Notes: generated by a model not told the origin, from the letters alone. Shown: positions 11,461 to 39,782, counted from the stretch's first letter. The stretch is DNA of 64,000 bases from Selaginella moellendorffii (GCF_000143415.4 NW_003314280.1:806001-870000), one strand, 5' to 3'. Translations and numbers: made by a program.

Positions 11461-12906
11461 CATTGCATTGACTTGGCAGCCTATATTAGTGTAGTTAATC
11501 TGGTTATTATTAATTCAAATTAAGAATTTTCATTATTAGCTATTTGAACTTATAGATTCTTTCCTTCTAGAGGGGCGTCAAACAAGTCATATATATATCT
11601 ATAAATATTCTCCTCTTTTAACTCTGATATATAGTAAAAAGTATCCTCTACATTGAGCTCAAAGGTACAACTTATATAAATTTTCTCTTTTGCAATTAAA
11701 AATATTGAAAGAGCTTAAACTTATATAATAAAAAGGAAAATTTTCATTTTCATTAAAGGATGAAAAGTAAATTAATAATTTATTATAAAAATGGCTTAAA
11801 ATAATCCAAAGTATTCTAACTAGTAGTTTATTGCATTTTGTATTTTTAGTTTATGGTTATATCATTGTTTAATTTGGGCTGTTACGGATCCCAAGCTCAA
11901 CCCCGGTCTTGTGCTCGAAGTCCACTTGGGACAGAGCCTGCCCCGAGCACCCCGCACACCCCGATGCTGGCAGGCGGACCGATGGGGAGTCACTGGTTGG
12001 ACGACCGAGACTCTCAAAGTACGGCCCACAGGTGTCTTGCTTGTGTGAGAGCGTATACATTCATGTTGTCCAACCAGGACTCCTGATGGAGCTTTTATCT
12101 TTTTTGTGATTTTACACTTAAATGTAGGGACTTTCTTACTTGGCTTCTCCATCCCGTGGCAGTCTGAAATCATGGGCCATGGTGTGGTGGGGATCTTGCT
12201 ATTGTAAATTTCCTGCAAAATTCCTCCCACTCCCGTCAGCTTGTGGTATCTATAAATCTATGTAAAGTTCCGCTTACCCTCGTCAGCGTGTGGTCATTTT
12301 CTTCTTTGCGAGTAGGTAATGAAGTTTGGCAAAGGGAAGGTAGAGATTGCTGCTTTTGCAGGTTTGGTTTGCGACCTGGTTTGCGATCGTCTAACCTGGT
12401 GTCTTTTGATTTTTAAAAGGATCTAATTAACTCTAAATCTTCCAATGCTCTAAACGAAGCCTCATATAATATGGGTACAAGGGATCCACTTGATGATGAA
12501 TCAACTTTCCACTTCCAAGCAACGAATCAATTTAATTTTGTTTACAGTCCACTTGTACCCGCTTAGGAAGCACGGACATTCCAAGCACCAACCCAGCTTT
12601 GCTCTAGAATGCACTATTGCCAAGTTCGCTTTCTTGTCACGAGGCTTAAAAGTACAAATAATTGGAGTGATAACTAGGTTCAAATCCTATACGTGATTCG
12701 GCTGGCCAAGGATATCCGAGGAGACTTAATCGAGATTACATTAGATCGAATCAAATATTCAAGATATACTTGTCTCAAAAGTCTTGCTTTGCTTTAGAGG
12801 TGGCCTAAAGTTTGGTGTGATTTTGTCGAGTATTTAAAGGCATAGATGTCCCTCAGATTATTAACTCACACTATCCAAGCAATATTAGAAGATTAAATCG
12901 AAGAAA

Positions 12907-13519
12907 ATGGCAAAATCAAGCATAGCATTCATTCTCCCACTTGCATGCCTCCTGCTTGCGAGTGCTGTTCATGTTTCAGCTTTAGACAATGATGCTAGTG
13001 GAGACCTCTCTGGTATGGTATATAACCTGGTCTAAACTTTTGTTTGACTCTTTGTCCATGTAAATGGTTTTGCAAGGCACTATGAGATCTCTAAAGACGG
13101 TGCTTCCTACAAATGGAACTTCATCAAACATTGGTGTCCCATTGGATCTAGTTGCGAAAGTACTTGGAATTGTCACTCAAGTTATAGCTAGTTTAAAGGA
13201 CCTCGTCCTCAAAGTTCCTTTGCTATGTGTCATCCTTTATCCAGTGATTATCATCCTTGAGATCATTGTGATCTACATCCCTGGTGGCTACCCTTGCCCG
13301 ATTATCATTGGCGTCATCTGCAAGTATCTGGGCAATGCCATTCCTGTGTGGACTCCAATCAAGTTCATCAAAGTTGATCTAACGGTTATCTTGAGCCTCA
13401 CCGCAACTATCAAGCTTCTGCAGAGTGTGATTATCCTTGTTACTCCAAACAGCTGCATTTTCCTTGTGCTGAGTGCAGTGGTTAGTATCCTTAAGTCGGT
13501 GCTTGCATTACTCTATTAA
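12907..13519 (+). CDS. Orphan secreted, highly hydrophobic protein, 182 aa (copy 1); exons 12907-13012 and 13077-13519
   Basis: ATG plus signal peptide MAKSSIAFILPLACLLLASAVHVSA. 64-bp phase-1 GT-AG intron joins in frame. TATTTAAA about 75 bp upstream and AATAAA downstream. ORF intact in all three copies. Confidence 0.85.
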
Positions 13520-14179
13520 GCTGTAATAGCGGATAAAATGCAAAATGTTTAGAATAAACAATCAAATAAAACTATACTAATATTATTGATCATTGGAGTT
13601 ATTTTAGAGTTGGATTTCAGGAATCTCATACTTTCAGCCTTAAAAACATTAAACTTGAGCGTGCTCTTATTCACGTCCATGGAGCGTGCCGATGTCGATC
13701 GACTCCAGCTCTCGCTCCTTAAGCTGCAAGCCCTTCATCACACAGAATTCCTTCAGCGCCTTTGTTCGATCAACAACCGTTGATCGAAGTGACAATGCCT
13801 GTGAGATAGGCATCTGAGGCCGCAGCTGCTCGCCACAAGAAACTCCACTTCTTCAACTTCATGCTGCTCATGGGATTTTCCCAGCAGCTCCACCCATCGT
13901 CGTTTTCGTTGTCGCTCGCCCGCCACTCCTAGAAAAGCGGGAGTCGAACCTTTAGATCTGGCAACAATCGGACATCCACGTGCCGCCATTAGCAAATTTG
14001 CTAATTTATACTTAATTAACACTGTATACCAAACGTATTTTAATAATGTACGTATATAATAAAATGAATAATGATCAAATCTCCAGCTCGTCCACCTTGC
14101 CGCTGCCGTCCTTTGTAGCTTCAAGCGTGTGACTTTTGATGAATATCAATCCGCTCGTAGATGAATATTTGGACCCTTC

Positions 14180-16462
14180 TTATCCGGCCGCCTCCTGTAT
14201 AGTCTTGAGCTTATCATGATCCTTCCACAGCCCCGCGCTCCGGTAGATGCTCGCCATCAGAACGTACGCAGCCGAGTCTTTCTCGTCGATCTTCGTCAGT
14301 GCCTCGAACGCAATCCTCCCCACTTCCACGTTCTTCCACTTGCGGCAGGCCCCGAGGACGGTCCTCCAAACCACAGATCCACCATGCACTGCTGTAGTGA
14401 TGAATCCCGCAAACAATGCCAGAGTTCGGGTCCATTGCCTGGAAAAACTCCCTGCCTCGTTCAACCAGGCCGCCGTGGCTGCAAGCAGTGATGACCGAGA
14501 CAAACGTGATCGCGTTTGCTCGCACGCCATCTCCTCGCATCTCGCGGAAGGCTTCGAACACGCGCGACGTGTTACCCGGTTGGCCGATTCCTGTGATCAG
14601 TGCATTTCTCGGACTGCCAGAGATCCAAACAAGTGCTCGGCCGCACCTCCCGTAGAAGTTTACCATGCACGTCCCCACAACATGGTCGTCTTCCAGCCCA
14701 CGCCTGTAAAACTCAGTCTGGATTTTCCTTCCAGCTTCGCTGGACCCAATGTTCCCACAGGCCGTAAGTCCCGCTACAAGAGTCCGAGAGTTTGGAGCAC
14801 AGTCCATGCTCTCCAAGAGTTCCAGCCCGAGCTCACTCTCACCGTTGTCTACATATCCCTGTATCAAGCTCGTCCAAACGACAACGTCCCGGCTAGGCAT
14901 GCGTTTGAGAACTGCTCGAGTTTTCACCATATCTCCACACTTCACCAAGCTGTTCTCGACAAATCTGTCCTTGCAGCATCCAAACTTCGCGGCGAGAGAA
15001 TGAATCTCCATCCCCTTTCTAGGCTCTGGATTCGCAATAGCTTTCCATCTTCTCGCGGAACAGGTTGTTCGGACGCTGAAAGGTGGACGCAGGCCATGAC
15101 CGCAGCAATAAACGTTCTCTCGTCCGGATCGTTCTCCCGAGCCATGCCGAAGACCAGCTCCAAGGCCAGCTTGCTGTCTCCACTTCCAGCAGATCCCTGG
15201 ATCATTGCGTTCCACGAAACCACGTCTCGGCCAGCCATGCCATCGAAGACCTTGCGAGCTTCCTCTAGCTTCCCATACTTCGCGTACATATCGATCAGTG
15301 CGTTCCCCACGAACACATCCTCACAGCACCTGTTGTTTGAAGCTTTAACGTGGATAGCCAGCCCAGTTTCCAAGCTCTTTCTCTTCACGAGTTTCCCGTC
15401 GACATCCACCACTTCCTCTCGCATTGCCGAGCTCGCACAGGCGGCAAGCGCAGCAACATACGTTCGAGAGTTTGGACAGCACCCGGATAGCTTCATATCT
15501 TCGAAGAACACGAGAGCCAGCTCGCTTTCCCGTTGTCCACAAAGCCTTGTATCAAGCTCGTCCAGAGCACGACATCACGGCGAGGCATGCTCTCGAAAAC
15601 CATCCGCGCGTCGACCATGCTCCATCGTGAACAGCGAGCCCCTTCTCCAGGCTCTTCGTCTTATCTCCTTGAGTGGCCTCCTCTTTCACTGCTAGATTCG
15701 CACAGGCCTTGGCAGCAGCAACGAAAGTCCGAGAGCTTGGCGAGCGGTCCATCTTCCCAAAGAACTCGAGAGCGACCTCGCTTTCTCCCTTCTCTACGTA
15801 GCCCAGTATCAAAGCGTTCCAGGAGACCACGCATCTCATCGAAGACCGATCGAGCATCGAGCATGCTGCCGCACTTGGAGTAAATATCGATCAGCGAGCT
15901 CGAAAACGTCTTCGCTGCAAGATGGTCCCATCTGCTTGGCTTGAGAATGGATGCCTCTGCCGGTCTCGAGACTAGCCTCCTTGACGAGCTTCCCATCGAC
16001 CAAAACAGCGGCTTCCTTCGCCGCGAGGCTGCTACAAGCCTTCGACGCGGCCATGAAGCTCCTGGAGTTTGGCTTGCAGCCCGACCGCCTGGCTTGCATC
16101 CTCTCGAAGAGATCCAGAGCCACATCGCTCTCGCCATTGTAGCCCAGCATCAAAACGTTCCAGGACATCACGTTTGGGTGAAGAATGCTGTCGAACACGC
16201 GGCGGGAATCCTCCATGCTGCCGCATTTTGCGTACATGTCCACCAGCGCATTGACGACATGGATCCCCAGCTGCTTGCTCTCCACCGCCTGGGCGTGGAT
16301 CGCCTTGCCCTGGCGCAAATCCCTTGTGCTGCCACATACCTTCAGCGCCGACACCAGCGCGGCCACCTGCTGATCGGGCTGCGCTGCCGAAGGAGCGAAT
16401 GCTGGTGCGGCGCATCGAATCGCTGCCGTCGCCAAGCCACAGAACAAGCGAACTCTTCCCAT
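14180..16462 (-). pseudogene. PLS-E subclass PPR pseudogene (copy 2)
   Basis: Repeated NALVDMYAKCGS/DVVSWNAMI motifs and an E domain (VWRTVLGACRKWKNVEVGRIAFEAL...AAYVLMASIY). No DYW domain. Many small deletions and frameshifts. Confidence 0.9.
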
Positions 16463-16489
16463 CCATCGCAAGAACCCTAAATATTTGCT

Positions 16490-17560
16490 AGCAACATGGA
16501 AATTCAACCAAGGCCGTCGATTCAAGAATATCGGACGGTTGGAACTGAATCTGGGACCATTTACATTCACCAATGTTCTTCTCATACACCGTGAAGGCAA
16601 TCCCCACGCCCGGAAAAAAGGCACTCGAGCAAAATCCCCCTGTACAACCCAGCAATGTGCCTCAGCGAGCTCGCAATCCCCATCTCCGATCGCCCTCAAG
16701 TTGCATCCTTCTCCTTCCCAAATCAATCGGAAACACCACTGAAAACAGGAGCGATGGCGATCAAACGTAATCGATCTTGATCTGTTGAGGGCTACTCCAC
16801 CGGAGATCAAGCTCGTCATCATCCTAGACGAGTCGGGCCTGAAAGTAAACATGCTCACACTCTAGTCCAAGGACTCGAAACTAAGAAAAAATCCACCTTT
16901 GAGCGTTCCAGTAGTTGTAGAGAGTCTCGTACACACAGAAGTTTATTGCAATTGTTGGGCCTACGGACTGGCAGGGAGAAAAACCAATAAGCTCTCGAAG
17001 AACGTACTAAAAGAGTCGGCCAGAGCCCCTTGTAAAGGCCAAGAAAGCTCTCCTGTGGAAAGCGCGTGGCAGATGCCCGTGTAGTGCTTTGAGGTTGTAT
17101 GCAAATCACAGGGGTCATTTCACTTGCGAGGTGAAGAGCACGGCGCAAAATAAGTCCCAAGAAACTCCCTGTCAAAGCCATACTTCAGCTAAGAGCTTCT
17201 GTTGATGATTGTGGGTGCCGTGGTGTGATGTTCCAGAGAAGTCGTTTGGCTGCCGGATGCTGGATCTCTTGGTGGCACTCGGACGTCCGGCATGATTTCA
17301 GGCGCTTGGCTGCCGTTTCAGTCTGCTGGAGCCACAAGCTCGTGGAGCGTGATCGCTTGATCCAAGCTGACCGGTGCCATCCTGCACTGTTGCGTGCTAT
17401 TCACTCGGAAGACTACGCTTGAAGTCATATCGAGGATAAGTTATTTCGTCTTTCTTCCAGCTTTGATGGTCCAGCACGCTTCAAAGTGATCTATCGTTGA
17501 CTGTTTTTCTTTGAACATCAGTCCAACTGGTGGACTAGATAGTCATGGTCCTAAAGGAGA
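16490..17560 (-). pseudogene. Mitochondrial carrier (SLC25) pseudogene (copy 2)
   Basis: GLYKGL, VGPTIAINFCVYETL, RRMQLEG, GLYRGILLE and PGVGIAFTVYE motifs, with frameshifts. Confidence 0.7.
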
Positions 17561-17689
17561 TGTACTGTGTTCCGTAAGAAGTTCCAAGTCCACATTCTAT
17601 ATTCCAGATCCCGCTACCTTGTGCAGTTTTCTGATCTATCAAATGGTTTGAATAAGAAGTAGCGGCCACGTCTTTCTCCAATTTGCTGC

Positions 17690-18200
17690 GGTTTTGTTTC
17701 TACTCTGCCTTTTTCACAACATCTCGGTCGCAGTGCCCCAGGAATCCATCCGGGATTGTCAACGACACACAGGTTCTTCTCTCTCTCGGAGTGGCATCAA
17801 CGTGTGGAACGAGACTGTCAATCCAAACGAATGGCTGGGCCTGTCTCGCCTGGACCTCTCTCATAACAACATCTCCTCGCTGAAGGTGGTTGGCTGCAAG
17901 AACATGTGGCTCAAGCTTCTCAACTTCTTTGCAAGAGTTCCTGGAAAATCTCTCCAGCCTTGAGAGTTTAGAAATCTTGGATCTCAGTTAGAACATCTTA
18001 CAGTCCCATAACGACCTTCTTTCCATCAGATGGAGCTCTTGCACAACGAATTCAGCGGCTCCATTCCAGAGACTCACGAACTTGACATGCCCGGAGATTT
18101 TGTATAACAGGTTTAATGGAGATCTACCCTCTGTGGAATGTCTCCAAACATTCCAGACCAGGCTTGTGTTTGTGCGCTGCAAGTAACTTTGTCTCTGAAC
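17690..18200 (+). pseudogene. LRR gene fragment (copy 2)
   Basis: Signal-like hydrophobic start, LSRLDLSHNNISSL and ELLHNEFSGSIP, with stops. Confidence 0.65.
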
Positions 18201-19810
18201 CATAATTTCAATCTCAATAAATTTTTGAATATATGTTTAGTTTGCATAAGTATGGTAATAGATATATCTAGAATATGCTTGAAAATTTTGGTTTATTCTT
18301 TAATGTTGTGTTTATAATTTATAAACATGTATATCATTTAAAATTTGCTATGTGTTGCATGCAGCAATGCTTTGGTTTTCTTAATAGTAGTGTTATTCCT
18401 TTATTAATCCAATTGATCAAATGAAAGTTTATAATTATAAACATATTTATAATTTATAAACACAAAATTAATCTTATTGAATATTAACCATTATATGGTA
18501 GAATAAACAAGAATATACAAGGAAGCGTTTAATAAGAAAGTTTATAAATTATAAATACAAGATTAATCTAAATGTATAGCAACCATTAGATGGTAGAATA
18601 TCCTAGAATATCCAAGAATATTCTAGGTTTATTCATTAGCAACGGGTTTGCTTAAGCAAACCAAAAATTTCCATAAACACCTCCAAGTATATTCTAGCAT
18701 ATTCTACAATCTAATGATGTATATACATTTAGATTAATCATGTGTTTTTTATTTATAGTAAATTTAACTTATATTAAAAATATGTTTTTATACACTTTTA
18801 GAGCACTTTTCCTGCTGGCTTTGCACGCAATGGTTCAGAGATCCTGCATGGGACCTGTGGTAGCAATATGAAATATTACTTCTCTTTGCTATTCTGTTTT
18901 AACCCAAACACCCACACATCTCCATATTCTTGCCAACCCAGACTGCCTTGAAGCTTATTAACTAACTCACTAAGTGATATTGTAACTTCTATAGAGGTGC
19001 AGAAGTTCACGTGGAGAGGGCAGCTCATTATGGAGGATATTTCCTTGGATCCTTATATGACTTTCTCTAATTCTATAATTTTTTAGTTTACTTAAACAAA
19101 GTAATACACATAGATATGCTTGGATATTCTATTATCTAACAGTTGTTATTCATATTTATTAATTTGGTAATTATAATTTATATACATGATTATAATTTGT
19201 AAACTTTCATAAACACTTACTAGTATATTCTATTTTATACTACCATCTAATGGTTGATACACAATAAGATTAATGATGGATAATTATTGATCAATTAGAT
19301 AATACTAAACAGGAATACTACTATTAAGCAAACTATACATGCAATGAGTAGCAATTTGTTTTATAAATAAAGTTCCCTATTCTCAATTATAGACCATATA
19401 TTCTTTCACATTTGAAATGATTTATTATAGTAGTTGATATATTAAGTTTTAATATACATTAAATTTTAAGTATATTATAATTGGTACAAAATAGACAGAT
19501 TATAAAAAACATTTATGTCATTGTAATTAATATTCCAATGCAATACACAACAAATTAATTTTCTGTATTTACTAAATTCTATTTAACTTTATAAAGTGAC
19601 ATAATAAAAACCTTGAAAAACAATACTCAAAACACATCTAAAAAAATTGAAAAGCTAAAGAAATTAGGTAAAGCCAATAATGAGGAAAAAAGAAGAAATA
19701 TTAAATAGGTGTTGTAATACTAAAGTTAGGATTAAAATAGAATAAGTGAAGAAGAGATATAAAAATACCAAAAAAACTTAATTTAATAACTATAAAATAT
19801 AATAATTAGT

Positions 19811-22800
19811 TGTGAGTGCTTGGAATAAGGAAAGAGAATACAGAAAATGTGTATATTAATTACTCCAAAAACCCTAGCTTATATACAAGAGCAAATGGTC
19901 CGAATTAAAATTAATCTAATAGCTATCAAAATCCCACTATGCTAATCCCACTATATATTAGTATACGGCATCATAATCGTACATTTGGACTTCATATCAT
20001 CCCCTCTTCTCAGAATAATGGAAGACCATCAAGGTTCTCTTGTAGGTGGGCCAGGATCTAAAGGAATGTCAAGAGGAGGCATCAGTAGATCTATAGATGG
20101 TATTAGGTGTTCCTGATGCCTTTGTATAAAGCGCTCTAACTGTTGCACATGCACAATTTCTGGAGGATCAGTCTGCTGGATATCATGCCGAACTTCATAA
20201 ACTTGCGGTCCAACTTGCTATAACACCTATATGGTCCTTTCCACTAAGCAAGGAGCCTCTTAAATAAACCATATATTGTAAAATGGGGAAAACAAACTAA
20301 CACCAAGTCATCCACTTTGTACTCTGCAAGTGGACGATGATAGAGTTATAACACCATTGTTATTCCAGTTGTATGCAGCCTAAGTGTTTGGCAGATTCTG
20401 CTTGGACAAGTGGAAGAATGCTCATTAAATATTGATCCCACGACTTAGCATCAGCAGCTCATGGCAATTGCAAAGGTAAACCTAATTCCGTTGGTAATAT
20501 TAAATAATGACCATATAGGAGTTTATATGGTGATGCACCAACAGAATTTTGCACCTCTGTGACATATGCATATCGAAGAGATGGCAAATAACCATCCCAA
20601 TGCGAATGCTGAAAGTTCACATACTTTGCAATTATTCCTTTGAATGTCCAAACGAGCCGTTCCACCAAACTGTTTGACTGTGGATGATAAGCACTTGTGA
20701 AAGTGTGGTGTATCCCCAACTAAGACGTCAAAACATGAAATGCCTCAGCTATAAATGCGGAACTATTATCTGAAAGAATCCGCTTTGGACAAGAATGCTG
20801 GAACACCACTCGATTGAGGAGGAAGTATTCAACAACAGTTGCAGAGGCACTAGCAAGAGCACCAACTTCCACCCAAAAAGTCAAATAATTAAAAACAATA
20901 ATAATATATTCATTGCCAGCAATCGATAATGAAAAAGGTCCCATAAGATCAAATGCCACCAACTCAAATGGACGGAAAGCTGCAATTGACTCCAACCGTC
21001 CTTCCATGGCACAAGGGGGAGTATTACAAACTTGGCATTAAACGCAGCTACGCACATACCAGATAACATCATGTCACATCTTTGGCTAATAGAAAGACCT
21101 GTGCAGCTTCTTGGTTACACAATGATGTCCCATATTCTCGCCTAGAATAAGAGAATCATGGTAGACATGGAGAAACTGTGGAATAAAAACGGAAAGCACC
21201 ACCAGCCATAAAGGATCATTAGGATCCATCCCTATAAAATAAAGAAGGCCGTCTTCAAGGCGATATAGAGAATGTAAATGCTAGAATGGCAAGTCATCAG
21301 CAAGTGATGTAGGATTCTCAAACCCATTTCGAAGCCTTCAAATCCAGAGCTCAAGCTTTTAAGCCTCGCGAACCTCATCAAAAAAACTATAGATCTTGCT
21401 CTGCACCTTGTGGATATTACATATCAAGTATAGCAACTGCCAACGGGACAAAATCCTCATCTAAAAAATCCAAAGATGCTGGAACAATAGGCTTGTAAAA
21501 AATATGAGAAGAGAGTGGAGAAGGAAGAGGAGCTCGAGAAAGGGCATTAGCATCAGCCATAGAACTCCCTAGGCGATGAACAACATCAAAATTATATCTC
21601 TGAAGTTTCAAAGCCCACTAAGCAGTACGACCAACTAGGTTCTTTCGCTTCAATAATGAAGTAATGACAACATGATTACCTTCAAGTAACATTTGAGAAC
21701 CATGTAGATATGCATGAAGTTTCTCGAAACCCCAGACTACTACTAAACACTCCTTCTCTGTCATGGAGTATTTCACCTTTGCTAGTTGTAATATACTGCT
21801 TATATATACAATGGGATAGCATTAACCAAGCACACTTAGACTCTCTTGCATCAACACACCTCCAAAACCAATATCAGAAGCATCTACGCACAAAATAAAA
21901 GGTCAAGTGTAGTCAGGATATGCCAAAACTGGAGGAATCGTCAAAAGCTCTTTAAGATCCACAAACACCCACTCACTGTCTAAAGACCAAATGAAAGATG
22001 ATATTGATGACTTCAGTAACATTTGCAATAATGCAATGCAATCAGAAAAATGATCCACAAAACAACTAAAATACTACACCTTGCTTAGGAAGCATTGCAT
22101 ATCATTCATACACTTCAGAGTAAGGAACTTTAGAACAGCCACAAGTTTGTCAGTATCAACTTGCAAACCCTTACGAAAAATACGGTACCCAAGATAAGTT
22201 GTATCCTTGGACCTAAACATGTATTTCGACCGCTTCAGCTTTAAACTAACATCCCGTTGCCGATCCAACACTTTACAAATGTCATGAATGTGCTCCTCCC
22301 ATGTCCTCTCTAAGTGGATCAAGACATCATTAATGAAGTCAGCAATTACCTCTAATATATTGCAAAGAACCTTGTCCATCATCCGCTAGAAATTTGCTAG
22401 AGCATTGTTCAAACCAAATGGCATCACCAAGAATTTGTACAAACCAAATGGTGTATGAAAAGCAGTCTTAGAAATATCTTCTTTAGCCATTGGTACTTGC
22501 CAGTACCCAAAAGTAAGATTTAGCCTTGTGAACCAACGACTTTGCCCCAGACGATCCAAGAGATTAGTAGTATGAGGAAGAGGGTACATATCTAGGATCA
22601 TCACTTCGTTTAACGGACGATAGTCGATGCAAAAATGAATACTCCCATTAGACTTCGTTACAAGATGAGGTTCACATGCCCAAGGACTCCACGACATCCG
22701 AATAACACCCTTCTCCAACATCTCCTTGACATTTGCACATAAAACCTTGATCTCTTTGGGTGACCGACAACGAACAGGAACCTTGATTGGATGAGCATCC

Positions 22801-24472
22801 CTAGTTGGAATCAGATGACGTGTGGCAATCTTGGTCCCAGACGATAGGTCAAATTCAAAAAGATCAGAATACTCCTTCATGAGTCAGTCAACCGCTGCAA
22901 CACAAAAATTGTCAGAGGGATTGGAAAATTGGTTCCACCGCACAACGCAAGTGTAGATGGCAATATGTGGCAATAGGTCAAGAAATAGAAGATAAACTCG
23001 AGTTTATCTTCTATTGAATAATAAACATAGAGAGAATAATAGGAAACCTCTTGTTTTAAAAATGAGTTTGGAAAATAAACACTAGATGGACTAGTGTCAA
23101 GTGAACCACTTGATGATACTCCCGAAAGAAAGATAGAGGGGTCACTGACTTATTTGTGCAAGGTCCCTTCATTACTCACGCAACTCCTTGTTTCCCGGAT
23201 GCATCTCGGTGTCTAGACCTTCCACTGCATCAACACCAATAAGACGTTGTTGACGCCAAGGTCTCCACCCAGGAAATGGAGGTCACCAATCCAGAAAATG
23301 CCGACAACATCGATAAGTGTGACCAACTTCATCACATGCCCAACAGCGAATGTCACGGCTACTACCACATCTTCACTCTTGTTTCTGGACTCAAGCAGTA
23401 GCAACATCGACCTCCATTGGAATAAGACCATTGCTCACAGAAAGTGGAGCGAAAGGATGTGCAACGAGAAGTGGAACAGGTGATGTCTCATAATGTTATG
23501 CCAAATGAAGAGCATCATCAAGGGTGGTTGGAATAAATGCATGCACAAGTCCAACAAAATTTTGACGAAATGCTGGCCACAACATTCCTGGCTTGATACA
23601 TTCTAACATATTTGGATCCACATGAAGCAAGAGGCTAAAAAAACGAACGCCAAATTGCATTATTGACTCAGATGGCTCTTGACGAAGACGATGCAATTGC
23701 TGGAAGGCATCATCACAATCGTCAGCATGTCCAAATGCGCATTTGAAGACGTCCAGGAGAACACTCCAATCCCCACGAGTGGCTACACTCAAATCATTGT
23801 ACCACCGCAATGCCGTCCCTTAAAGACACGTGGGAAACTTATGCAAATGTCAAGCATCATCCTAAAAATGATATATGGCAATCACCGTGAAGTGATCGAA
23901 CCAATTGTACACATCATCTCTAAAATTCCCACAAAAGAACTCTAGTTGAATGCGAAGATTGGCACAAGGAGTAGGAGGAGTTGTACCATGTGCCGTGAAT
24001 GCCGCCATCAACTAAGTTTGGTTGTTCAATTGCAATTGCATTGCATTAAACAATTGAACCAACTGTTACGTTAGAGTCAAAGGAGGAGACTGCTACTCTA
24101 CCATAAAGGTGAATGAATAGGAAAGAGCAAAAGACGAGAAATGAGAAAAAAAACTAGAAGGAAAAAGAGATTTAGACAATGGAAAAGTTAGACCTAAACC
24201 AAAATCCTGAAAAGAAAGAACAAAAGAAAGGAAATGGAAAAAACTAGATCTAGATGACGCAAAAGTTGGATTTAAACCAAAATCCCAAATCTAAGCACTC
24301 CTCAGGGACAATAAAAAATGCCCCTCAACTCCACCAATATGAGTGCTTGGAATAAAAAATGGAAATACATGTAAGAGCGAGTGGTCCGGATTAAAGCCAA
24401 TTTGATGGCTACCAAAATTCCACTATGTTAATATTAGTATATGGCATCATAGCTGTACACTTGGACCTCATA
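19811..24472 (-). mobile_element. Ty3/Gypsy LTR retrotransposon, defective, with two LTRs
   Basis: LTRs 19811-19996 and 24338-24472. PPT (reverse complement TCATCCCCTCTTCT) at 19997-20010. PBS-like TGGTGGAGTTGAGGGG at about 24320-24336. Order gag-RT-RH-INT. Empty sites at about 9855 and 35270. Confidence 0.92.
20130..23950 (-). pseudogene. Gypsy gag-pol remnants
   Basis: gag (QQLHRLRQEPSESI), RT (SPWACEPHLVTKSNGSIHFCIDYRPLN, KTAFHTPFGLYKFLVMPFGL, FINDVLI), RNase H end (LQRYNFDVVHRLGSSMADANALSR), integrase (PFELVAFDLMGP, TSAYHPQSNSLVER). Confidence 0.9.
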
Positions 24473-24603
24473 TAATAAATTTATAGAGAAAAGTATTATT
24501 ATCTCAACCTCTAAAAAATGCTAAAAATAGTTGTATATATATGTAGATAGACTAGCTTTTAAATAATTTTTAATATTAAGTTAGGTATTAAAAACATAAA
24601 ATG

Positions 24604-26930: not shown

Positions 26931-28681
26931 ATGTTAGATTGTGTTGACTTGACAGCCTATATTAGTGCAGTTAATCACTCAAATTAAAGAAATTCCATTT
27001 TTAGCTACTTAAACTTATTACAAAATACTAGATTCTTTCCTTCTAGAGGGGCTTCAAACAAGTGATATATATTTACAAGTACTCTCCTCTTTTTAAGTTT
27101 GATAGATAGTAAAAAGTCTCCTCTACATTGAGCTCAACTTAGTTTAATAAAAAGGAAAATTTTAATTTTCATTAAAGGATGTATGAAAAGTAAATTAATA
27201 ATTTATTATAATAAATTACTATGTGTTGCATATAGCAACACTTGGTTTGCTTAATGGTAGTTTTATTATTACTTATTAATCCAATCGATCAAATAAACTT
27301 TATAATTATAAGCATGTATGTTATTTATAAACACAAGATTAATCTTATTGCATATCAACCATTAGATGATAGAATAAAAAAGAATATACTAAAAAGGGTT
27401 TAAGAAAAGTTTATAAATTATAAGTACAAGATTAATCTAAATGAATAACAACCATTAGATTGTAGAATATCCTAGAATATCCAAGCATATTCTAGGTATA
27501 TTCACTACCATCCATAGGTTTGCTTAAGAAAACCAAAAATGGCTTATACTACCGTTACCTTGATATAAAAATGAAATTTTTTTTTAATAATATTCTAATT
27601 AGTAGTTTTTTGTGTGATATGCTATAATAGTTTTAGTTTGTGGTTATATCATTGTTTAATTTGGATCCCAAGCTCAACCCCCAGTCTTGTGCTCAAATTC
27701 CACTTGGGACATCCCCCCAACAGACCCTGCCCCGAGCACCCTGCGCACCCCGACGCTGGCGGGCAGACCGATGTGGAGTCATTGGTTGGGCGACCGAGAC
27801 TCTCTAAGTACGGCCCACAGGTGTCTTGCTTGCTTGTGTGAGAGAGTATATATTCAACCAGGACTCCTGATGGAGCTTTTATCTTTTTTGTAATTTTACA
27901 CTTAGAAGTAGGGACTTTCTTACTTGGCTTCTCCATCCCGTGGCAGTCTGAAATCACGGGCCATGGTGTGGTGGGGATCTTGCTATTGTAAATTTCCTGC
28001 AAAATTCCTCCCACTCCCGTCAGCTTGTGGTATCTATAAATCTATGCAAAGTTCCGCTCACCCTCGTCAGCATGTGGTCATTTTCTTCTTTGCAAGTAGG
28101 TAATGAAGTTTGGCAAAGGGGAGGTAGAGATTGCTGCTTTTGCAGCTGTGGTTTGCGACCTGGTTTGCAATCATCTAACCTGGTGTCTTTTGATTTTTAA
28201 AAGGATCTAATTAACTCTAAATATTTCAATGCAAGCCTCATATAATATGGGTACAAGGGATCCACTTGATGATGAATCAACTTTCCAGTTCCAAGTAACG
28301 AATCAATTTAATTTTGTTTACAGTCCACTTGTACCCGCTTAGGAAGCACGGACATTTCAAGCACCAACCCAGCTTTGCTCTAGAATGCATCATTGCCAAG
28401 TTCGCTTTCTTGTCACGAGGCTTAAAAGTACAAATAATTGGAGTGATAACTAGGTCCAAATCCTATACGTGATTCGCCTGGCCAAGAATATCCGAGGAGA
28501 CTTAATCGAGATTACATTTGATAGAATCAAATATTGAAGATATACTTGTCTCAAAAGTCTTGCGTTGCTTTAGAGGTGGCCTAAAGTTTGGTGTGATTTG
28601 TCGAGTATTTAAAGGCATAGATGTCCCTGAGATTAATAACTCACACTATCCAAGCAATATTAGAAGATTAAATCGAAGAAA

Positions 28682-29294
28682 ATGGCAAAATCAAGCATAG
28701 CATTCATTCTCCCACTTGCATGCCTCCTGCTTGCGAGTGCTGTTCATGTTTCAGCTTTAGACAATGATGTTAGTGGAGACCTCTCTGGTATGGTATATAA
28801 CCTGGTCTAAACTTTTGTTTGACTCTTTGTCCATGTAAATGTTTTTGCAAGGCACTATGAGATCTCTAAAGACGGTGCTTCCTACAAATGGAACTTCATC
28901 AAACATTGGTGTCCCATTGGATCTAGTTGACAAAGTACTTGGAATTGTCACTCAAGTTATAGCTAGTTTAAAGGCCCTCGTCCTCAAAGTTCCCTTGCTG
29001 TGTGTCATCCTTTATCCAGTGATTATCATCCTTGAGATCATTGTGATCTACATCCCTGGTGGCTACCCTTGCCCAATTATCATTGGCGTCATCTGCAAGT
29101 ATCTGGGCAATGCCATTCCTGTGTGGACTCCAATCAAGTTCATCAAAGTTGATCTAACGGTTATCTTGAGCCTCACCGCAACTATCAAGCTTCTGCAGAG
29201 TGTGATTATCCTTGTTACTCCAAACAGCTGCATTTTCCTTGTGCTGAGTGCAGTGGTTAGTATCCTTAAGTCGGTGCTTGCATTACTCTATTAA
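28682..29294 (+). CDS. Orphan secreted hydrophobic protein (copy 2); exons 28682-28787 and 28852-29294
   Basis: Same structure as 12907-13519 with only a few substitutions. Confidence 0.85.
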
Positions 29295-29710
29295 GCTGTA
29301 ATAGCGAAATGCAAATGCAAAATGCAAAATGTTTAGAATAAACAATCAAATAAAACTATACTAATATTATTGATCATTGGAGTTATTTTAGAGTTGGATT
29401 TCAGGAATCTCACAGCTCTTATTCACGTCCATGGAGCGTGCCGATGTCGATCGACTCCATCTCTCGCTCCTTAAGCTGCAAGCCCTTCATCACACAGAAT
29501 TTCCTTTAGCGCCTTTGTTCGATCAACAACCGTTGATCGAAGTGACAATGCCTGTGAGATAGGCATCTGAGGCCGCAGCTGCTCGCCACAAGAAACTCCA
29601 CTTCTTCAACTTCATGCTGCTCATGGGATTTTCCCAGCAGCTCCACCCATCGTCGTTTTCGTTGTCGCTCGCCCACATTGCACTCGCCACTCCTAGAAAA
29701 GCGGGAGTCG

Positions 29711-29760
29711 AACATCCACGTCCATCCACGTCCATCCACGTCCATCCACGGACATCCACG
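29711..29760 (+). repeat. 10-bp tandem repeat (TCCATCCACG) x5
   Basis: Direct reading. Absent at the homologous site near 13950-13980. Confidence 0.9.
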
Positions 29761-29968
29761 TGCCGCCATTAGCAAACTTGCTAATTTATACTTAATTAAC
29801 ACTGTATACCAAACGTTCACTATCAATTTTAATAATGTACGTATATAATAAAATGAATAATGATCAAATCTCCAGCTCGTCCACCTTGCCGCTGCCGTCC
29901 TTTGTAGCTTCAAGCGTGTGACTTTTGATGAATATCAAACCGCTCGTAGATGAATAGTTGGACCCTTC

Positions 29969-32470
29969 TTATCCGGCCGCCTCCTGTATAGTCTTGAGCT
30001 TATCATGATCCTCCCACAGCCCCGCGCTCCGGTAGATGCTCGCCATCAGAACGTACGCAGCCGAGTCTTTCCCGTCGATCTTCGTCAGTGCCTCGAACGC
30101 AATCCTGCCCACTTCCACGTTCTTCGGCAGGCCCCGAGGACGCTCCTCCAGACCACAGCGTCGCTCTCAAAGGCCTGCTCTCGAGGACTTTGACGGCCTC
30201 TTCCAGTCGGTTTGCACGCCCGAAGAGATCCACCAAGCTGCTGTAGTGATGAATCCCCACTTCCACGTTCTTCCACTTGCGGCAGGCCCCGAGGACGGTC
30301 CTCCAAACCACAGATCCACCATGCACTGCTGTAGTGATGAATCCCGCAAACAATGCCAGAGTTCGGGTCCATTGCCTGGAAAAACTCCCTGCCTCGTTCA
30401 ACCAGGCCGCCGTGGCTGCATGCAGTGATGACCGAGACAAACGTGATCGCGTTTGCTCGCACGCCATCTTCTCGCATCTCGCAAAAGGCTTCGAACACGC
30501 GCCCTGTTGGCCGAATCCTGTGACCAGTGCATTTCTCCGACTGCCAGAGATTCAAACAAGTGCTCGGCCGCAGTCATAACCCCGCACCTCCCGTAGAAGT
30601 TTACCATGCACGTCCCCACAACATGGTCGTCTTCCAGCCCACGCCTGCAAAACTCAGTCTGGATTTTCCTTCCAGCTTCACTGGACCCAACGTTCCCACA
30701 GGCCATAAGTCCCGCTACAAGAGTCCGAGAGTTTGGAGCACAGTCCATGCTCTCCAAGAGTTCCAGCCCGAGCTCACTCTCACCGTTGTCTACATATCCC
30801 TGTATCAAGCTCGTCCAAACGACAACGTCCCGGCTAGGCATGCGTTTGAAAACTGCTCGAGCTTTCACCATATCTCCATACTTGGCATACATGTCCACCA
30901 AGCTGCTCCCGACAAATCTGTGCTCGCAGCATCCAAACTTCGCGGCGAGAGAATGAATCTCCATCCCCTTTTCTAGGCTCTGGATTCGCAATAGCTTTCC
31001 ATCTTCTCGCGGAACAGGTTGTTCGGATGCTGAAAGGTGGACGCAGGCCATGACCGCAGCAATAAACGTTCTCTCGTCCGGATCGTTCTCCCGAGCCATG
31101 CCGAAGACCAGCTCCAAGGCCAGCTTGCTGTCTCCACTTCCAGCAGATCCCTGGATCGTTGCGTTCCACGAAGACCTTGCGAGCTTCCTCTAGCGTCCCA
31201 CACTTCGCGTACATATCGATCAGTGTGTTCCCCACGAACACATCCTCACAGCACCTATTGTTTGAAGCTTCACCGTGGATAGCCAGCCCAGTTTCCAAGC
31301 TCTTTCTCTTCACGAGTTTCCCGTCGACATCCACCGCTTCCTCTCGCATTGCCGAGCTCGCACAGGCGGCAAGCGTAGCAACATACGTTCGAGAGTTTGG
31401 ACAGCACCCGGATAGCTTCATATCTTCGAAGAACACGAGAGCCAGCTCGCTTTCCCCGTTGTCCACAAAGCCTTGTATCAAGCTCGTCCAGAGCACGACA
31501 TCACGGCGAGGCATGCTCTCGAAAACCATCCACGCGTCGACCATGCTCCCACACTTCGAGTACATGTCCACGAGGCTGCTCCCCTCGAAGATATCTCCAC
31601 AGCAGTGGCTTTTCACAGCTCCATCGTGAACAGCGAGCCCCTTCTCCAGGCTCTTCGTCTTCACCATCTTTCCATCTCCTTGAGTGGCCTCCTCTTTCAC
31701 TGCTAGATTCGCACAGGCCTTGGCAGCAGCAACGAAAGTCTGAGAGTTTGGCGAGCAGTCCATCCTCCCAAAGAACTCGAGAGCGACCTCGCTTTCTCCA
31801 TTCTCTACGTAGCCCAGTATCAAAGCAGACCACGTCTCGCCGTGGCATCTCATCGAAGACCGATCGAGCATCGAGCATGCTGCCGCACTTGGAGTACATA
31901 TCGATCAGCGAGCTCGAAAACGTCTTCGCTGCAAGATGGCCCCATCTGCTTGGCTTGAGAGTGGATGCCTCTGCCGGTCTCGAGACTAGCCTCCTTGACG
32001 AGCTTCCCGTCGACCAAAACAGCGGCTTCCTTCGCCGCGAGGCTGCTACAAGCCTTCGACGCGGCCATGAAGCTCCTGGAGTTTGGCTTGCAGCCCGACC
32101 GCCTGGCTTGCATCCTCTCGAAGAGATCCAGAGCCACATCGCTCTCGCCATTGTAGCCCAGCATCAAAACGCTCCAGGACATCACGTTTGGGTGAAGAAT
32201 GCTGTCGAACACGCGGCGGGAATCCTCCATGCTGCCGCATTTTGCGTACATGTCCACCAGCGCATTGACGACATAGATCCCCAGCTGCTTGCTCTCCGCC
32301 GCCTGGGCGTGGATCGCCTTGCTAGCAAATATTTAGGGTTCTTGCGATGGATGGGAAGAGTTCGCTTGTTCCATGGCTTGGCGACGGCAGCGATTCGATG
32401 CGCCGCACCAGCATTCGCTCCTTCGGCAGCGCAGCCCGATCAGCAGGCGGCCGCGCTGGTGTCGGCGCTG
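29969..32470 (-). pseudogene. PLS-E PPR pseudogene (copy 3); N-terminal ~150 bp (about 32320-32470) inverted
   Basis: Same motifs as copy 2 with different indels and an internal duplication of the E-domain region. Confidence 0.9.
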
Positions 32471-33430
32471 GATTTGCTGGAAATTCAACCAAGGCCGTCG
32501 ATTCAAGAATATCGGACGGTTGGAAATGAATCTGGGACCATTTACATTCACCGCGACGCTAATGTTCTTCATCACTTCATACACCGTGAAGGCAATCCCC
32601 ACGCCCGGAAAAAAGGTACTCGAGCAAAATCCCCCTGTACAACCCAGCAATGTGCCTCAGCGAGCTCGCAATCCCCATCTCCGATCGCCCTCGAGTTGCA
32701 TCCTTCTCTTTCCCAAATCGATCGGAAACACCACTGAAAACAGGAGCGATGGCGATCAAACGTAATCGATCTTAAGACTCTCACCTGTTGAGGGCTACTC
32801 CACCGGAGATCAAGCTCGTCACCATCCTGGACGAGTCGGGCCTGAAAGTAAACATGCTCACACTCTAGTCCAAGGACTCGAAACTAAGAAAAAATCCACC
32901 TTTGAGCGTTCCAGTAATAAGCTCTCGAAGAACGTGCTAAAAGCGTCGGCCAGAGCCCCTTGTAAAGGCCAAGAAAGCTCTCCTGTGGAAAGCGTGTGGC
33001 AGATGCCCGTGTAGTGCTTTGAGGTTGTATGCAAATCACAGTGGTCATTTCACTTGCGAGGTGAAGAGCACGGCGCAAAATAAGTCCCAAGAAACTCTCT
33101 GTCAAAGCCATACTTCAGCTAAGAGCTTCTGTTGATGATTGTGGTGTGATGTTCCACAGAAGTCGTTTGGCTGCCGGATGCTGGATCTCTTGGTGGCACT
33201 CGGACATCTTGGCTGCCGTTTCAAGGAGCGTGATCGCTTGATCCAAGCTGACCGGTGCCATCCTGCACTGTTGCGTGCTATTCACTCGGAAGACTACGCT
33301 TGAAGTCATATCGAGGATAAGTTATTTCGTCTTTCTTCCAGCTTTGATGGTCCAGCACGCTCTATCGTTGACTGTTTTTCTTTGAACATCAGTCCAACTG
33401 GTGGACTAGATAGTCATGGTCCTAAAGGAG
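32470..33430 (-). pseudogene. Mitochondrial carrier pseudogene (copy 3)
   Basis: HIAGLYRGILLEY, PGVGIAFTVYEVMK and GLYKGL motifs, with deletions. Confidence 0.7.
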
Positions 33431-33559
33431 ATGTACTGTGTTCCGTAAGAAGTTCTAAGGCCACATTTTATATTCCAGATCGCTACCTTGTGCAGTTTTC
33501 TGATCTATCAAATGGTTTGAATAAGAAGTAGCGGCCACGTCTTTCTCCAATTTGCTGCG

Positions 33560-34075
33560 GTTTTGTTTCTACTCTGCCTTTTTCACAACATCTCGGTCGC
33601 AGTGCCCCAGGAATCCATCCGGGATCGTCAACGACACACAGGTTCTTCTCTCTCTCGGAGTGCCATCAACGTGTGGAACAAGACTGTCAATCCAAACGAA
33701 TGGCCGGGGCTGTCTCGCCTGGACCTCTCTCATAACAACATCTCCTCGCTGAAGGTGGTTGGCTGCAGGAACATGCGGCTCAAGCTTCTCAACTTCTTTG
33801 CAAGAGTTCCTGGAAAATCTCTCCAGCCTTGGGAGTTTAGAAATCTTGGATCTCAGTTAGAACATCTTACAGTCCCATAACGACCTTGTTTCCATCAGTT
33901 GGACCTCTCGCACAACGAATTCAGTGGCTCCATTCCAGAGACTCACGAACTTGACGTGCCTGGACATTTCGTATAACAGGTTTAGTGGAGATTTACCCAA
34001 TATTTGAAGCAAGAACGTCTGTGGAACGTCTCAAACAATTCCAGACCAGGCTTGTGTTTGTGCGCTGCAAGTATG
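33560..34075 (+). pseudogene. LRR gene fragment (copy 3)
   Basis: LSRLDLSHNNISSL, LDLSHNEFSGSIP, LDISYNRFSGDLP. Confidence 0.7.
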
Positions 34076-35397
34076 AACCATAATTTAAATTCTCAATAAA
34101 TTTTTGAATATATGTTTATTTTGCATAAGTATGGTAATGGATATATCTAAAATATGCTTGAAAATTTTGGTTTATTATTTAATGTTGTGTTTATAATTTA
34201 TAAACATGTATATCATTTAAAAATTTGGTATGTGTTGCATGTAGCAACACTTGGTTTTCTTAATAGTAGTGTTATTCCTTTATTAATCCAATTGATCAAA
34301 TGGAAGTTTATAATTATAAAACTATTTATAATTTATAAACACAAAATTAATCTTATTTAATATTAACCATTATATGGTAGAATAAATGAGAATATACTAG
34401 GAAGTGTTTAATAAGAAATTTTATAAATTATAAATACAAGATTAATCTAAATGTATAACAACCGTTAGATGGTAGAATATCCTAGAATATCCAAAAATAT
34501 TCTAGGTATTTAGTAGCAACAGGTTTCCTTAAGCAAACAAAAAATTTCCATAAACACCTCCAAGTATATTCTAGCATATTCTACAATCTAATGGTGTATA
34601 TACATTTAGATTAATCATGTGTTTTTTATTTATAGTAAATTTAACTTATATTAAAAATTAGTTTATGATGTTTTTATACACTTTTAGAGAGCTTTTCCTG
34701 CTGGCTTTGCAAGCAATGGTTCAGAGATCCTGCAAGGGACCTGTGGTAGCAATATAAAATATTACTTCTCTTTGCTATTCTGTTTTAATCCAAACACCCA
34801 CACATCTCCATCTTCTTGCCAACTCAGACTGCCTTGAAGCTCATTAACTAACTCACTAAGTGATATTGTAATTTCTATAGAGGTGCTGTTATTCTCAAGG
34901 AGAAGTTCAAGTGGAGAGGGCAAGTCATTATGGGGGATATTTCCTTGGATCCTTGTATGACTTTCTCTAATTCTATGATTTTTTAGTTTACTTAAACAAA
35001 GTAATACACAAAGATATGCTTGGATATTCTATTATCTAACAGTTGTTATTCATTTATATTAATTTGGCAATTATAATTTATATACATGGTTATAATTTGA
35101 GAAATTGAGAAGCTAAAGAAATTACGTAAAGCCAATAATGAGAGAAAAGAAGAAATATTAACTAGGTGTTGTAATACTAAGGTTAGGATTAAAATGGAAT
35201 AAGTGAAGAAGAGATATAAAAATAACAAAAATAAAATATTAATTTAATAAATATATAATATAATTATTAGTAAATTTATAGGGAAAAGTATTACTACCTA
35301 GACCTCTAAAAAATACTAAAAATAGTTGTATATATATGTAGACAGACTAGCTTTTAAATATTTTTTAATATTAAGTTAGGTATTAAAAATAAAAATG

Positions 35398-37680: not shown

Positions 37681-39169
37681 GAGATTGTGTTGACTTGACA
37701 GCCTATATTAGTGCAGTTAATGACTCAAATTAAGAATTTTCATTTTTAGCTACTTAAACTTATTATAAAATACTAGATTCTTTCCTTCTAGAGGGGCTTC
37801 AAACAAGTCATATATATCTACAAGTACTCTCCTCTTTTAAATTTGATATATAGTAAAAATTATCCTCTACATTGAGCTCAACTTAATTTAATAAAAACGA
37901 AAATTTTAATTTTCATTAAAGGATGTATGAAAAGTAAATTAATAATTTATTATAAAAATGGCTTATACTAATCCATCGATATAAAAATGAAATTTGTTTT
38001 TGATAATATTCTAACTAATAGTTTATTGCATTTTGTATTTGTGTGATATGCTATAATAAGTGATCTGATTATGAAAAATCATAGATATGTAATATGTATA
38101 GCAATCAATTTGTTGTTGGTAATTAACACCTTCATCCCAAACCTACGTGTACGGCAGGGGCGAAATACACGTATTTTCAGGTAAAAGTATGAAAAAGACT
38201 TCTTGATGAAAGATTTTCACTATGGGCATGCATTTTCATCTTACTTATGGTTATATCATTGTTTAATTTGGATCCCAAGCTCAACCCCCGGTCTTGTGCT
38301 CGAATTCCACTTGGGACAACCCCCCAACAGAGCCTGCCCCGAGCACCCTGCACACCCCGACGCTGGCGAGCGGACCGATGGGGAGTCACTGGTTGGACGA
38401 CCGAGACTCTCTAAGTACGGCCCACAGGTGTCTTGGTTGCTTGTGTGAGAGAGTATACATTCATGTTGTCCAACCAGGACTCCTGATGGAGCTTTTATCT
38501 CGTTGCTTGGAACTGGAAAGTTGATTCATCATCAAGTGGATCCCTTGTACCCATATTATATGAGGCTTCATTTAGAGCATTGAAAGATTTAGAGTTAATT
38601 AGATCCTTTTAAAAATCAAAAGACACCTGGTTAGATGATCGCAAACCAGGTCGCAAACCACAGCTGCAAAAGCAGCAATCTCTACCTTCCCTTTGCCAAA
38701 CTTCATTACCTACTCGCAAAGAAGAAAATGACCACATGCTGACGAGGGTGAGCGGAACTTTGCATAGATTTATAGATACCACAAGCTGACGGGAGTGAAT
38801 CAATTTAATTTTGTTTACAGTTCACTTGTACCCGCTTAGGAAGCACGGACATTCCAAGCACCAACTCAGCTTTGCTCTAGAGTGTATTATTGCCAAGTTT
38901 GCTTTCTTGTCACGAGTACAAATAACTGGAGTGATAACTAGGTTCAAATCCTATACGTGGTTCGCCTGGCCAAGGATATCCGAGGAGACTTAATCGAGAT
39001 TACATTAGATAGAATCAAATATTCAAGATATACTTGTCTCAAAAGTCTTGCGTTGCTTTAGAGGTGGCCTAAAGTTTGGTGTGATTTGTCGAGTATTTAA
39101 AGGCATAGATGTCCCTCAGATTAATAACTCACACTATCCAAGCAATATTAGAAGATTAAATCGAAGAAA

Positions 39170-39782
39170 ATGGCAAAATCAAGCATAGCATTCATTCTCC
39201 CACTTGCATGCCTCCTGCTTGCGAGTGCTGTTCATGTTTCAGCTTTAGACAATGATGTTAGTGGAGACCTCTCTGGTATGGTATATAACCTGGTCTAAAC
39301 TTTTGTTTGACTCTTTGTCCATGTAAATGTTTTTGCAAGGCACTATGAGATCTCTAAAGACGGTGCTTCCTTCAAATGGAACTTCATCAAACATTGGTGT
39401 CCCATCGGCTCTAGTTGACAAAGTACTTGGAATTGTCACTCAAGTTATAGCTAGTTTAAAGGACCTCGTCCTCAAAGTTCCCTTGCTGTGTGTCATCCTT
39501 TATCCAGTGATTATCATCCTTGAGATCATTGTGATCTACATCCCTGGTGGCTACCCTTGCCCGATTATCATTGGCGTCATCTGCAAGTATCTGGGCAATG
39601 CCATTCCTGTGTGGACTCCAATCAAGTTCATCAAAGTTGATCTAACGGTTATCTTGAGCCTCACTGCAACTATCAAGCTTCTGCAGAGTGTGATTATCCT
39701 TGTTACTTCAAACAGTTGCATTTTCCTTGTGCTGAGTGCAGTGGTTAGTATCCTTAAGTCGGTGCTTGCATTACTCTATTAA
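39170..39782 (+). CDS. Orphan secreted hydrophobic protein (copy 3); exons 39170-39275 and 39340-39782
   Basis: Same structure as copies 1 and 2, ORF intact. Confidence 0.85.

Follow-up and report, generated by a model that had tools for sequence, protein, structure and literature searches.

A 64,000-nucleotide stretch of Selaginella moellendorffii scaffold GL377584.1 (approximately 806001-870000; hereafter the window, with positions counted from its first letter) carries three copies of a two-exon gene, each encoding a protein of 182 amino acids. GL377584.1:808907-829519 and window 2907-23519 are 100% identical. The gene is almost certainly real, expressed, and selected. It belongs to what is probably a functional, lineage-restricted family, the product of which would be a small integral membrane "proteolipid" with three to four embedded helices, not a soluble secreted protein. 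An original prediction made for this DNA had described three near-identical two-exon genes for a secreted, extremely hydrophobic protein, amplified for dosage; the three-copy observation is confirmed, while the secreted product and the selection for dosage fare less well.

Gene copies, transcription, and selection

Across the 613 nt of the gene, copy 1 is 98.7% identical to copy 2 and 98.0% identical to copy 3, with no indels. Copies 2 and 3 are offset from copy 1 by +15775 and +26263, respectively, and the exon translations are free of stops in all three. The copies and their parts are arranged as follows:

12790-12862 (+): copy 1 core promoter; paralog-conserved block GGTGGCCTAAAGTTTGGTGTGATTTTGTCGAGTATTTAAAGG, with TATA-like TATTTAAA at 12831-12838
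12907-13012 (+): copy 1 exon 1, from ATG to splice donor; predicted signal peptide MAKSSIAFILPLACLLLASAVHVSA and acidic spacer LDNDASGDLS
13013-13076 (+): copy 1 intron; 64 nt, GT..AG, phase 1; contigs of four runs join 13012 to 13077
13077-13519 (+): copy 1 exon 2, stop included; TMRSLK, NGT sequon, amphipathic helix H1, and hydrophobic helices H2-H5
13520-13578 (+): copy 1 3′ untranslated region; AATAAA at 13553-13558 and 13565-13570
28682-29294 (+): copy 2; exon 1 28682-28787, intron 28788-28851, exon 2 28852-29294
39170-39782 (+): copy 3; exon 1 39170-39275, intron 39276-39339, exon 2 39340-39782

The final base of copy 1 exon 1 opens a split Gly codon. A mechanical list of open reading frames (ORFs) contains only the exon-2 ORFs (13064-13519, 28839-29294, and 39327-39782), bearing out the earlier remark that such a track misses the 5′ end of the genes. 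The spliced products correspond to public models: SELMODRAFT_441799 (P0012) for copy 1, SELMODRAFT_441800 (P0001) for copy 2, and SELMODRAFT_412885 (P0011) for copy 3. "Triplicated" thus describes the window itself, but a fourth intact copy, its protein identical to that of copy 1, lies 1.2 kb before the window start (GL377584.1:804209-804821). RefSeq represents this fourth copy as a 279-amino acid read-through model (XP_002972279.2; P0010), though the 182-amino acid frame and its normal stop are intact. Members of the family are already GenBank and RefSeq entries, publicly listed under the hypothetical-protein label ever since the genome was released, and several have been automatically named "Transmembrane protein" in UniProt; the family is, in this sense, already annotated and of an ordinary kind. 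A literature search for four family locus tags found no paper.

Contigs from four public runs (four studies, three coded organism labels) were aligned to window positions 11900-14400. In each run, a contig passes directly from 13012 to 13077, skipping exactly the 64-nt intron; contig coverage starts at 12863 or 12880 and ends at 13531-13578, with zero depth over 12068-12655 and 13580-14167. Because the intron is skipped exactly and the flanks are uncovered, these contigs reflect spliced mRNA, not genomic DNA. The contig from run X8 shows exactly the copy-2 variants at 13155/6, 13200, 13219, 13225, and 13300; the X1 contig carries a copy-1-like variant, and the X12 contig is a paralog with a 9-nt deletion typical of the branch found at GL377573.1 and GL377565.1 (loci L004 and L005). 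The highest contig word depth was 422, in one run, though contig depth is a poor measure of expression. The TATA-like box and polyadenylation signal noted originally are both well placed relative to these transcripts: TATTTAAA stands ~30 nt 5′ of the first contig start, in a block near-invariant across seven paralogous promoters (three scaffolds aligned), and the AATAAA signals stand just ahead of the contig 3′ ends.

Two further observations concern the transcribed region and its flanks. Contigs in all four runs match a 191-nt piece of PPR remnant at 14186-14376 and then diverge at both ends; their probable source is an expressed relative at some other locus. Additionally, a tRNA B-box-like GGTTCGAATCC (GGTTCAAATCC in the window, 12650-12700) occurs ~230 bp 5′ of the ATG in several paralogs (L004:9700-10000, L005:14740-15100) and may be a short interspersed nuclear element (SINE) or other tRNA-derived remnant. 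The upstream tRNA or SINE suggested by this box was sought with ARAGORN, which found no tRNA in the window.

Rates of nonsynonymous (dN) and synonymous (dS) substitution were estimated by the Nei-Gojobori method, exon by exon, leaving out the split codon. Between loci, dN/dS is 0.22-0.41, and 0.19-0.28 within the hydrophobic core; the synonymous excess gives, for window copy 1 (w1), Fisher p values of 1e-4 against L004a, 1e-3 against L005a, and 2e-14 against L001, the locus of a paralog (P0009) with dS >1 and dN/dS 0.22. With dN/dS of 0.2-0.4 between loci, the protein is under purifying selection. No indel in 613 nt separates the six recent copies, two of them on GL377626.1 and four on GL377584.1, and their events are 10 nonsynonymous and 7 synonymous. 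Before residue 83, 6 are nonsynonymous and 0 synonymous; from residue 83 onward, the counts are 4 and 7. These small counts hint at an N-terminal ectodomain that is relaxed or diversifying and a core that is constrained. Substitution divergence within the window is 0.5-3.0% in the gene and 3.1-7.9% in the upstream kilobase, and the flanks are full of gaps.

Family members and distribution

Cluster look-ups place at least 17 gene models of the family on at least seven scaffolds. A word search with exon 2 returned seven proteins; an exhaustive phmmer search with P0001, the public protein used for full-length searches and equal to the exon translations of copy 2, returned five among 1.84 billion cluster representatives; and a profile search with 10 members returned eight. 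All are from S. moellendorffii. No relatives outside this species were identified by word search, phmmer, profile search, Pfam, PDB sequences, or three fold searches, in agreement with the original prediction, which did not recognize the family. At E ≤ 10, Pfam searches with the exon translations and three full-length members gave only a chance-level match to OrgC (E 0.099), and a family-profile search of PDB sequences gave zero matches. A feature search of the ESM Atlas with the whole protein and with residues 43-182 reached, among named clusters, best values of 0.80 and 0.77, to arthropod clusters and at chance level.

Intron position is common to all paralogs, with intron lengths of 57-68 nt. 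The deepest paralog, P0009 (L001, GL377694.1), is 59% identical and has a phase-1 intron at the same codon; it retains DLSGTMRSLK, VIIILEIIVIY.PGG.PCP, E97, K118, D136, Q151, and N160-S161-C162. Six of the 10 DLSGTMRSLK codons differ synonymously between the window copy and P0009, including Arg39 (AGA vs CGT). The loci on GL377565.1 and GL377573.1 contain clusters, inverted copies, and many gene fragments. Dispersed paralogs share only ~0.85 kb, from 100-250 bp 5′ of the ATG to the polyadenylation site, with homology ending at ~13585; no terminal repeats or transposable element (TE) domains were seen at the ends of or within this shared unit. Paralog clusters at L004:7551-9682 and L005:14873-15744 both adjoin a PAP_fibrillin (plastid lipid-associated protein) gene. 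Since L004 and L005 are near-identical (dS 0.026, L005b vs L004a), this linkage is probably one neighborhood seen twice. Synteny of the gene with a downstream PPR gene at the L001 paralog was considered and rejected, as the PPRs are just ~26% identical.

Tandem arrays that encode small orphan membrane proteins are a common feature of plant genomes. The family resembles other lineage-restricted tandem families of S. moellendorffii in its two exons, signal peptide, clustering, lack of outside relatives, and "hypothetical" labels; it differs from them in encoding a hydrophobic helical product and in showing clear selection, expression, and a copy-number difference between sister scaffolds. It presents a clean case of a taxonomically restricted family that is expressed, under purifying selection, and old in its lineage (dS >1), yet with unequal crossing-over still driving its turnover. 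Families of this sort are candidates for lycophyte biology specific to the lineage, and the invariant S1P-type motif described below offers a concrete biochemical handle. No long-standing question is opened by these data, and sequence alone assigns no function to the family.

Protein features, RSLK motif, and competing readings

Each of the product features originally described—a signal peptide-like N-terminus, an acidic spacer, RSLK, an NGT sequon, and an Ile/Leu/Val-rich remainder with four Cys—is found. The first 25 residues consist of a Lys-bearing n-region, a hydrophobic core of 16 residues, and, ahead of the likely cleavage point, VHVSA; the stretch 26-42 is acidic and terminates in RSLK (R39-K42). 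The N48-G-T sequon occurs in this branch only, being NET in P0003 and deleted in P0009. The four Cys of the mature protein are at residues 86, 109, 117, and 162; C86 corresponds to Lys in P0009. The grand average of hydropathy (GRAVY) is 1.27 over the mature protein (residues 26-182) and reaches 1.69 over residues 83-182, a part that is 51% Ile, Leu, and Val, with eight Pro in turns.

AlphaFold predicts helices at 58-81, 83-102, 109-122/126, 137-156, and 162-181, each of 18-24 residues with a predicted local distance difference test score (pLDDT) of 70-87, in an up-down bundle (predicted template modeling score, pTM, 0.60-0.62). Helix 58-81 is strongly amphipathic (hydrophobic moment 1.55). 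The helices are joined by conserved short Pro/Gly turns of 5-10 residues (PGGYPCP, TPNS), and invariant polar residues are few: E97, K118, D136, Q151, N160, and S161. Fold searches returned only generic up-down bundles, along with some transporter membrane domains: the best Foldseek match in PDB had E 0.72, and the best match in the wide VIA-align search (ferritin/Dps types) had Z 11.2, which lies under the quoted level of Z ~13 from which helical-bundle matches become meaningful. A shape search of the Atlas gave a best TM score of 0.57, to an unnamed bacterial cluster. The structure searches suggested alongside the original prediction therefore assigned no family.

Membrane spans are generally recognized from a 19-residue Kyte-Doolittle mean of ~1.6, and such hydropathy, in ~20-residue helices rich in beta-branched residues and linked by short turns, is the pattern of integral membrane proteins. 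In the 182-residue product, three 19-residue peaks exceed this value (2.83 near residue 92, 2.16 at 148, and 2.56 at 172). Mean Kyte-Doolittle values for helices 83-102, 109-126, 137-156, and 162-181 are 2.62, 1.60, 1.99, and 2.56, so that helix 109-126 is borderline. From these values, membrane integration appears probable. Of the description of the product as secreted and extremely hydrophobic, the hydrophobicity stands, but the GRAVY of 1.27 and four ~20-residue segments rich in beta-branched residues make a membrane-integral protein likelier than a secreted one.

Each copy has its own TATA promoter and yields a spliced mRNA. Under the membrane reading, the signal peptide would direct the product to the secretory pathway, with a predicted cut after VHVSA25. 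The Golgi subtilase S1P/SBT6.1 would have a candidate site in the invariant DLSGTMRSLK, with a putative cut after K42. Amphipathic helix 58-81 comes next, followed by the four Ile/Leu/Val-rich helices; three to four helices would be embedded in the membrane, with the N-terminal part facing the lumen or apoplast and the invariant polar residues facing the bundle interior.

RSLK, an R-x-L-x motif, follows the signal peptide on the predicted luminal side and shows no change across 10 aligned members, the 59% paralog among them. In human S1P, the B-site is RSLK, a proven S1P site, and Ac-RSLK-AMC is the standard S1P assay substrate (PMC12067269); plant SBT6.1 recognizes RXXL and RXLX (PMC4983112). 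The original identification of RxLx as an SBT6.1/S1P motif is therefore well founded, and RSLK has stayed invariant despite the six synonymous codon changes around it. On these grounds, we tentatively suggest that the product may be processed at RSLK by S1P/SBT6.1, with less assurance than for membrane integration.

Several points weigh against this account. Helix 109-126 is only marginally hydrophobic, with 19-residue values of 1.1-1.9 and a Lys at mid-helix, and the membrane assignment is drawn from hydropathy and composition. AlphaFold confidence is moderate and the alignment shallow (mean pLDDT 65.8 from the single sequence and 62.1, with no gain, from a 10-member alignment). A topology of four spans with the N-terminus outside would also put the sole Lys-rich loop (118-136; K118, K131, and K134) on the outer face, contrary to the positive-inside rule; three spans, with the N-terminus outside and the C-terminus inside, would suit that rule better. 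The C-terminal helix, following the invariant N-S-C, could instead be a signal for glycosylphosphatidylinositol (GPI) attachment. As to transcription and distribution, the runs are presumed to be RNA (listed as "RNA?"), with tissues not given, and "species-restricted" is an upper bound, as other Selaginella or lycophyte genomes may be missing from the collections, so that the family is possibly genus-restricted.

The proposal of a secreted, S1P-processed, extremely hydrophobic lipid- or surface-active protein (a coat, surfactant, or membrane-lytic defense agent) amplified for dosage seems unlikely, though it draws on some of the same evidence. The signal peptide and invariant RSLK are as expected for it, as is the amphipathic character of helix 58-81; all six recent copies are intact; and the contig depth reached in one run, weak as it is as a measure of expression, points the same way. 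The excess of nonsynonymous changes in the N-terminal part relative to the core could likewise reflect diversifying pressure as in defense genes, but it comes from small counts. Against this proposal, saposin, hydrophobin, and LTP signatures are absent in Pfam at E ≤ 10, the fold matches are generic helical bundles only, and the segments are patterned like membrane spans and unlike soluble lipid binders of the amphipathic kind. Moreover, the amplified unit holds junk DNA and varies between sister scaffolds, such that dosage selection is unneeded. A narrower version, to which we give little credence, is that S1P/SBT6.1 would release a 140-amino acid proteolipid for delivery to the cell surface as a surface-active or membrane-perturbing agent, in defense or in water-repellent or lipidic layers, with the ectodomain diversifying among recent copies. 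If true, a surface-delivered proteolipid of this kind would be a functional counterpart, specific to lycophytes and arisen de novo, of the surfactant proteolipids of animals.

There is a similarly slim chance that the protein sits at the outer face of the plasma membrane by other means, either lipid-anchored (GPI via residues 162-182, after N160-S161-C162) or monotopic, with helix pairs as hairpins in one leaflet. The hydrophobic segment does reach the C-terminus with invariant small residues just ahead of it, both hairpin turns (PGGYPCP and TPNS) show conservation, and the simple four-span model would fit the positive-inside rule poorly; however, the candidate omega site passes into the hydrophobic tail with no polar spacer in between, and the C-terminal helix is conserved like the rest of the core (dN/dS ~0.2), whereas GPI signals usually evolve freely. 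Least probable by far is that the gene is non-functional—a young or decaying lineage-specific transcript, or mobile-element cargo, left intact just through recent duplication. At 1.5-2.4% divergence, intact frames in the window copies would be expected by chance and, taken alone, are weak evidence of function; the ~0.85 kb shared among dispersed paralogs would be in keeping with a small unit that is mobile or was captured; and fragments are many at L004 and L005. The strong evidence of constraint comes instead from older paralogs: P0009, at dS >1, keeps the frame, the intron phase, and 59% identity, and its dN/dS largely refutes this reading; the conserved motif also shows synonymous turnover. 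No TE domain was found in Pfam and no terminal repeats at the shared boundaries, and each copy has a conserved TATA promoter alongside the spliced mRNA. A TE ORF was rejected as an identity for the gene on the same two negative results, the TE domains in the window lying elsewhere (RVT_1 at 22386-22880, hAT/DUF659 at 1701-3134).

Returning to the membrane proteolipid reading, the product may act most like the small proteolipid membrane proteins, and might be made like S1P-processed precursors. The c subunits of V-ATPase and F-ATPase and the PMP3/RCI2 proteins share with it a high GRAVY, ~20-residue helices, very short turns, and small size, as well as a lone invariant carboxylate (here E97) midway along the helix of highest hydrophobicity. 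The likeness is an analogy only: there is no sequence or specific fold match, and those proteins are without the signal peptide, acidic RSLK pro-region, and amphipathic pre-helix of the S. moellendorffii protein. Known S1P/SBT6.1 precursors (RALF23, GOLVEN1, pectin methylesterases, bZIP17/28) resemble it in having a luminal R-x-L-x after a signal peptide; here, however, the part downstream of the predicted cleavage is a 140-amino acid hydrophobic helical domain, unlike the hormone peptides, enzymes, and transcription factors among those precursors.

Other candidate identities were rejected. The loose likeness to saposin and surfactant protein B (SP-B) raised originally extends to a helical, hydrophobic, Cys-containing secretory precursor, but the S. 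moellendorffii protein is far more hydrophobic; exon 2, P0001, P0003, and P0009 match neither SapB_1 nor SapB_2 in Pfam at E ≤ 10, and the protein has four Cys, one of them not conserved, rather than six in three disulfides within an ~80-amino acid domain. The saposin fold is also absent among the Foldseek PDB and VIA matches (best E 0.72, Z 11.2), obtained with a model of moderate confidence. Oleosins are alike in a long hydrophobic stretch (82-117 here) broken by a conserved Pro/Gly turn, IPGGYPCP; oleosins themselves lack a signal peptide and have a 72-residue hairpin with a PX5SPX3P knot, whereas this protein has an N-terminal signal peptide, a PGGYPCP turn, and no PF01277 match. The pectin methylesterase/invertase inhibitor (PMEI), a four-Cys four-helix bundle, gave no Pfam match at E ≤ 10, and its structure 1x8z_C ranks 47th (E 3.5, TM 0.24).

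Origin of the array and neighboring sequence

Unequal crossing-over of a unit of 10-16 kb, recent in date, gave rise to the copies. The repeats and the PPR remnants in them are arranged as follows:

11841-19199 (strand not assigned): repeat unit 1 (gene, PPR pieces, and AT-rich spacer); collinear with unit 2 at 27628-35099 by self-BLAST, repeat families D1-D10, and substitution profile
38797-39859: repeat unit 3; 1.07-kb gene core only, with flanks rearranged and locally inverted
14214-16858 (-): PPR gene remnant 3′ of copy 1; Pfam PPR matches in overlapping ORFs of different frames, tblastn matches in pieces
~30003-32257 (-): counterpart PPR remnant in unit 2; pieces over different frames

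A sister scaffold, GL377626.1:1043503-1074057 (L008/L007, compared with window 1-49726), is 97.3% identical downstream of copy 3 and is probably the other haplotype. It holds two gene copies only, ~9.9 kb apart, with an intact 657-amino acid PPR gene, counterpart of the broken PPR remnant 3′ of window copy 1, between them and no copy in the 10 kb upstream; GL377584.1, in contrast, holds four copies and broken PPRs. Because PPR wrecks and TEs travel in the amplified unit and the two scaffolds differ in copy number (four vs two), dosage selection is not needed to explain the array. The pattern agrees with a birth-and-death mode for the family, which has clusters and fragments elsewhere too. The claim that these genes are the only intact ones in the array holds insofar as the PPR pieces are broken over several frames, but annotators call further models there, one of 193 amino acids and PPR models of 184, 273, and 552 amino acids. 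Similarly, of the neighbors described as broken, the PPR genes are indeed fragmented, while the carrier and LRR pieces are sub-threshold Pfam hints only, with E of 0.03-0.09: a mitochondrial carrier at 16855-17178 (-; E 0.087) and an LRR at 17694-17960 (+; E 0.027-0.057).

Several rearrangements and insertions accompany the repeats. Compared with copy 1, copy 3 has each of the ~300-bp segments beside the gene core in inverted orientation (12228-12525/38500-38797, 96.6% identity; 13628-13909/39954-40246, 92.8%), and the same is true of copy 3 compared with copy 2; gene orientation is unchanged. An insertion at 19200-24472, bearing an RVT_1 ORF (22386-22880, -), interrupts the collinearity of unit 1 with unit 2 and is later than the duplication. 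Toward the window start, a hAT transposase remnant lies in separate ORFs at 1701-3134 (-), with DUF659 (E 4e-34) and a hAT C-terminal dimerization domain. Immediately 3′ of the array lie two ordinary genes, an SGL/strictosidine-synthase-like gene (40858-41289, +) and a DUF308 membrane protein gene (42389-42856, -); the models that they match on the sister scaffold (L007:11335-13720) are intact.

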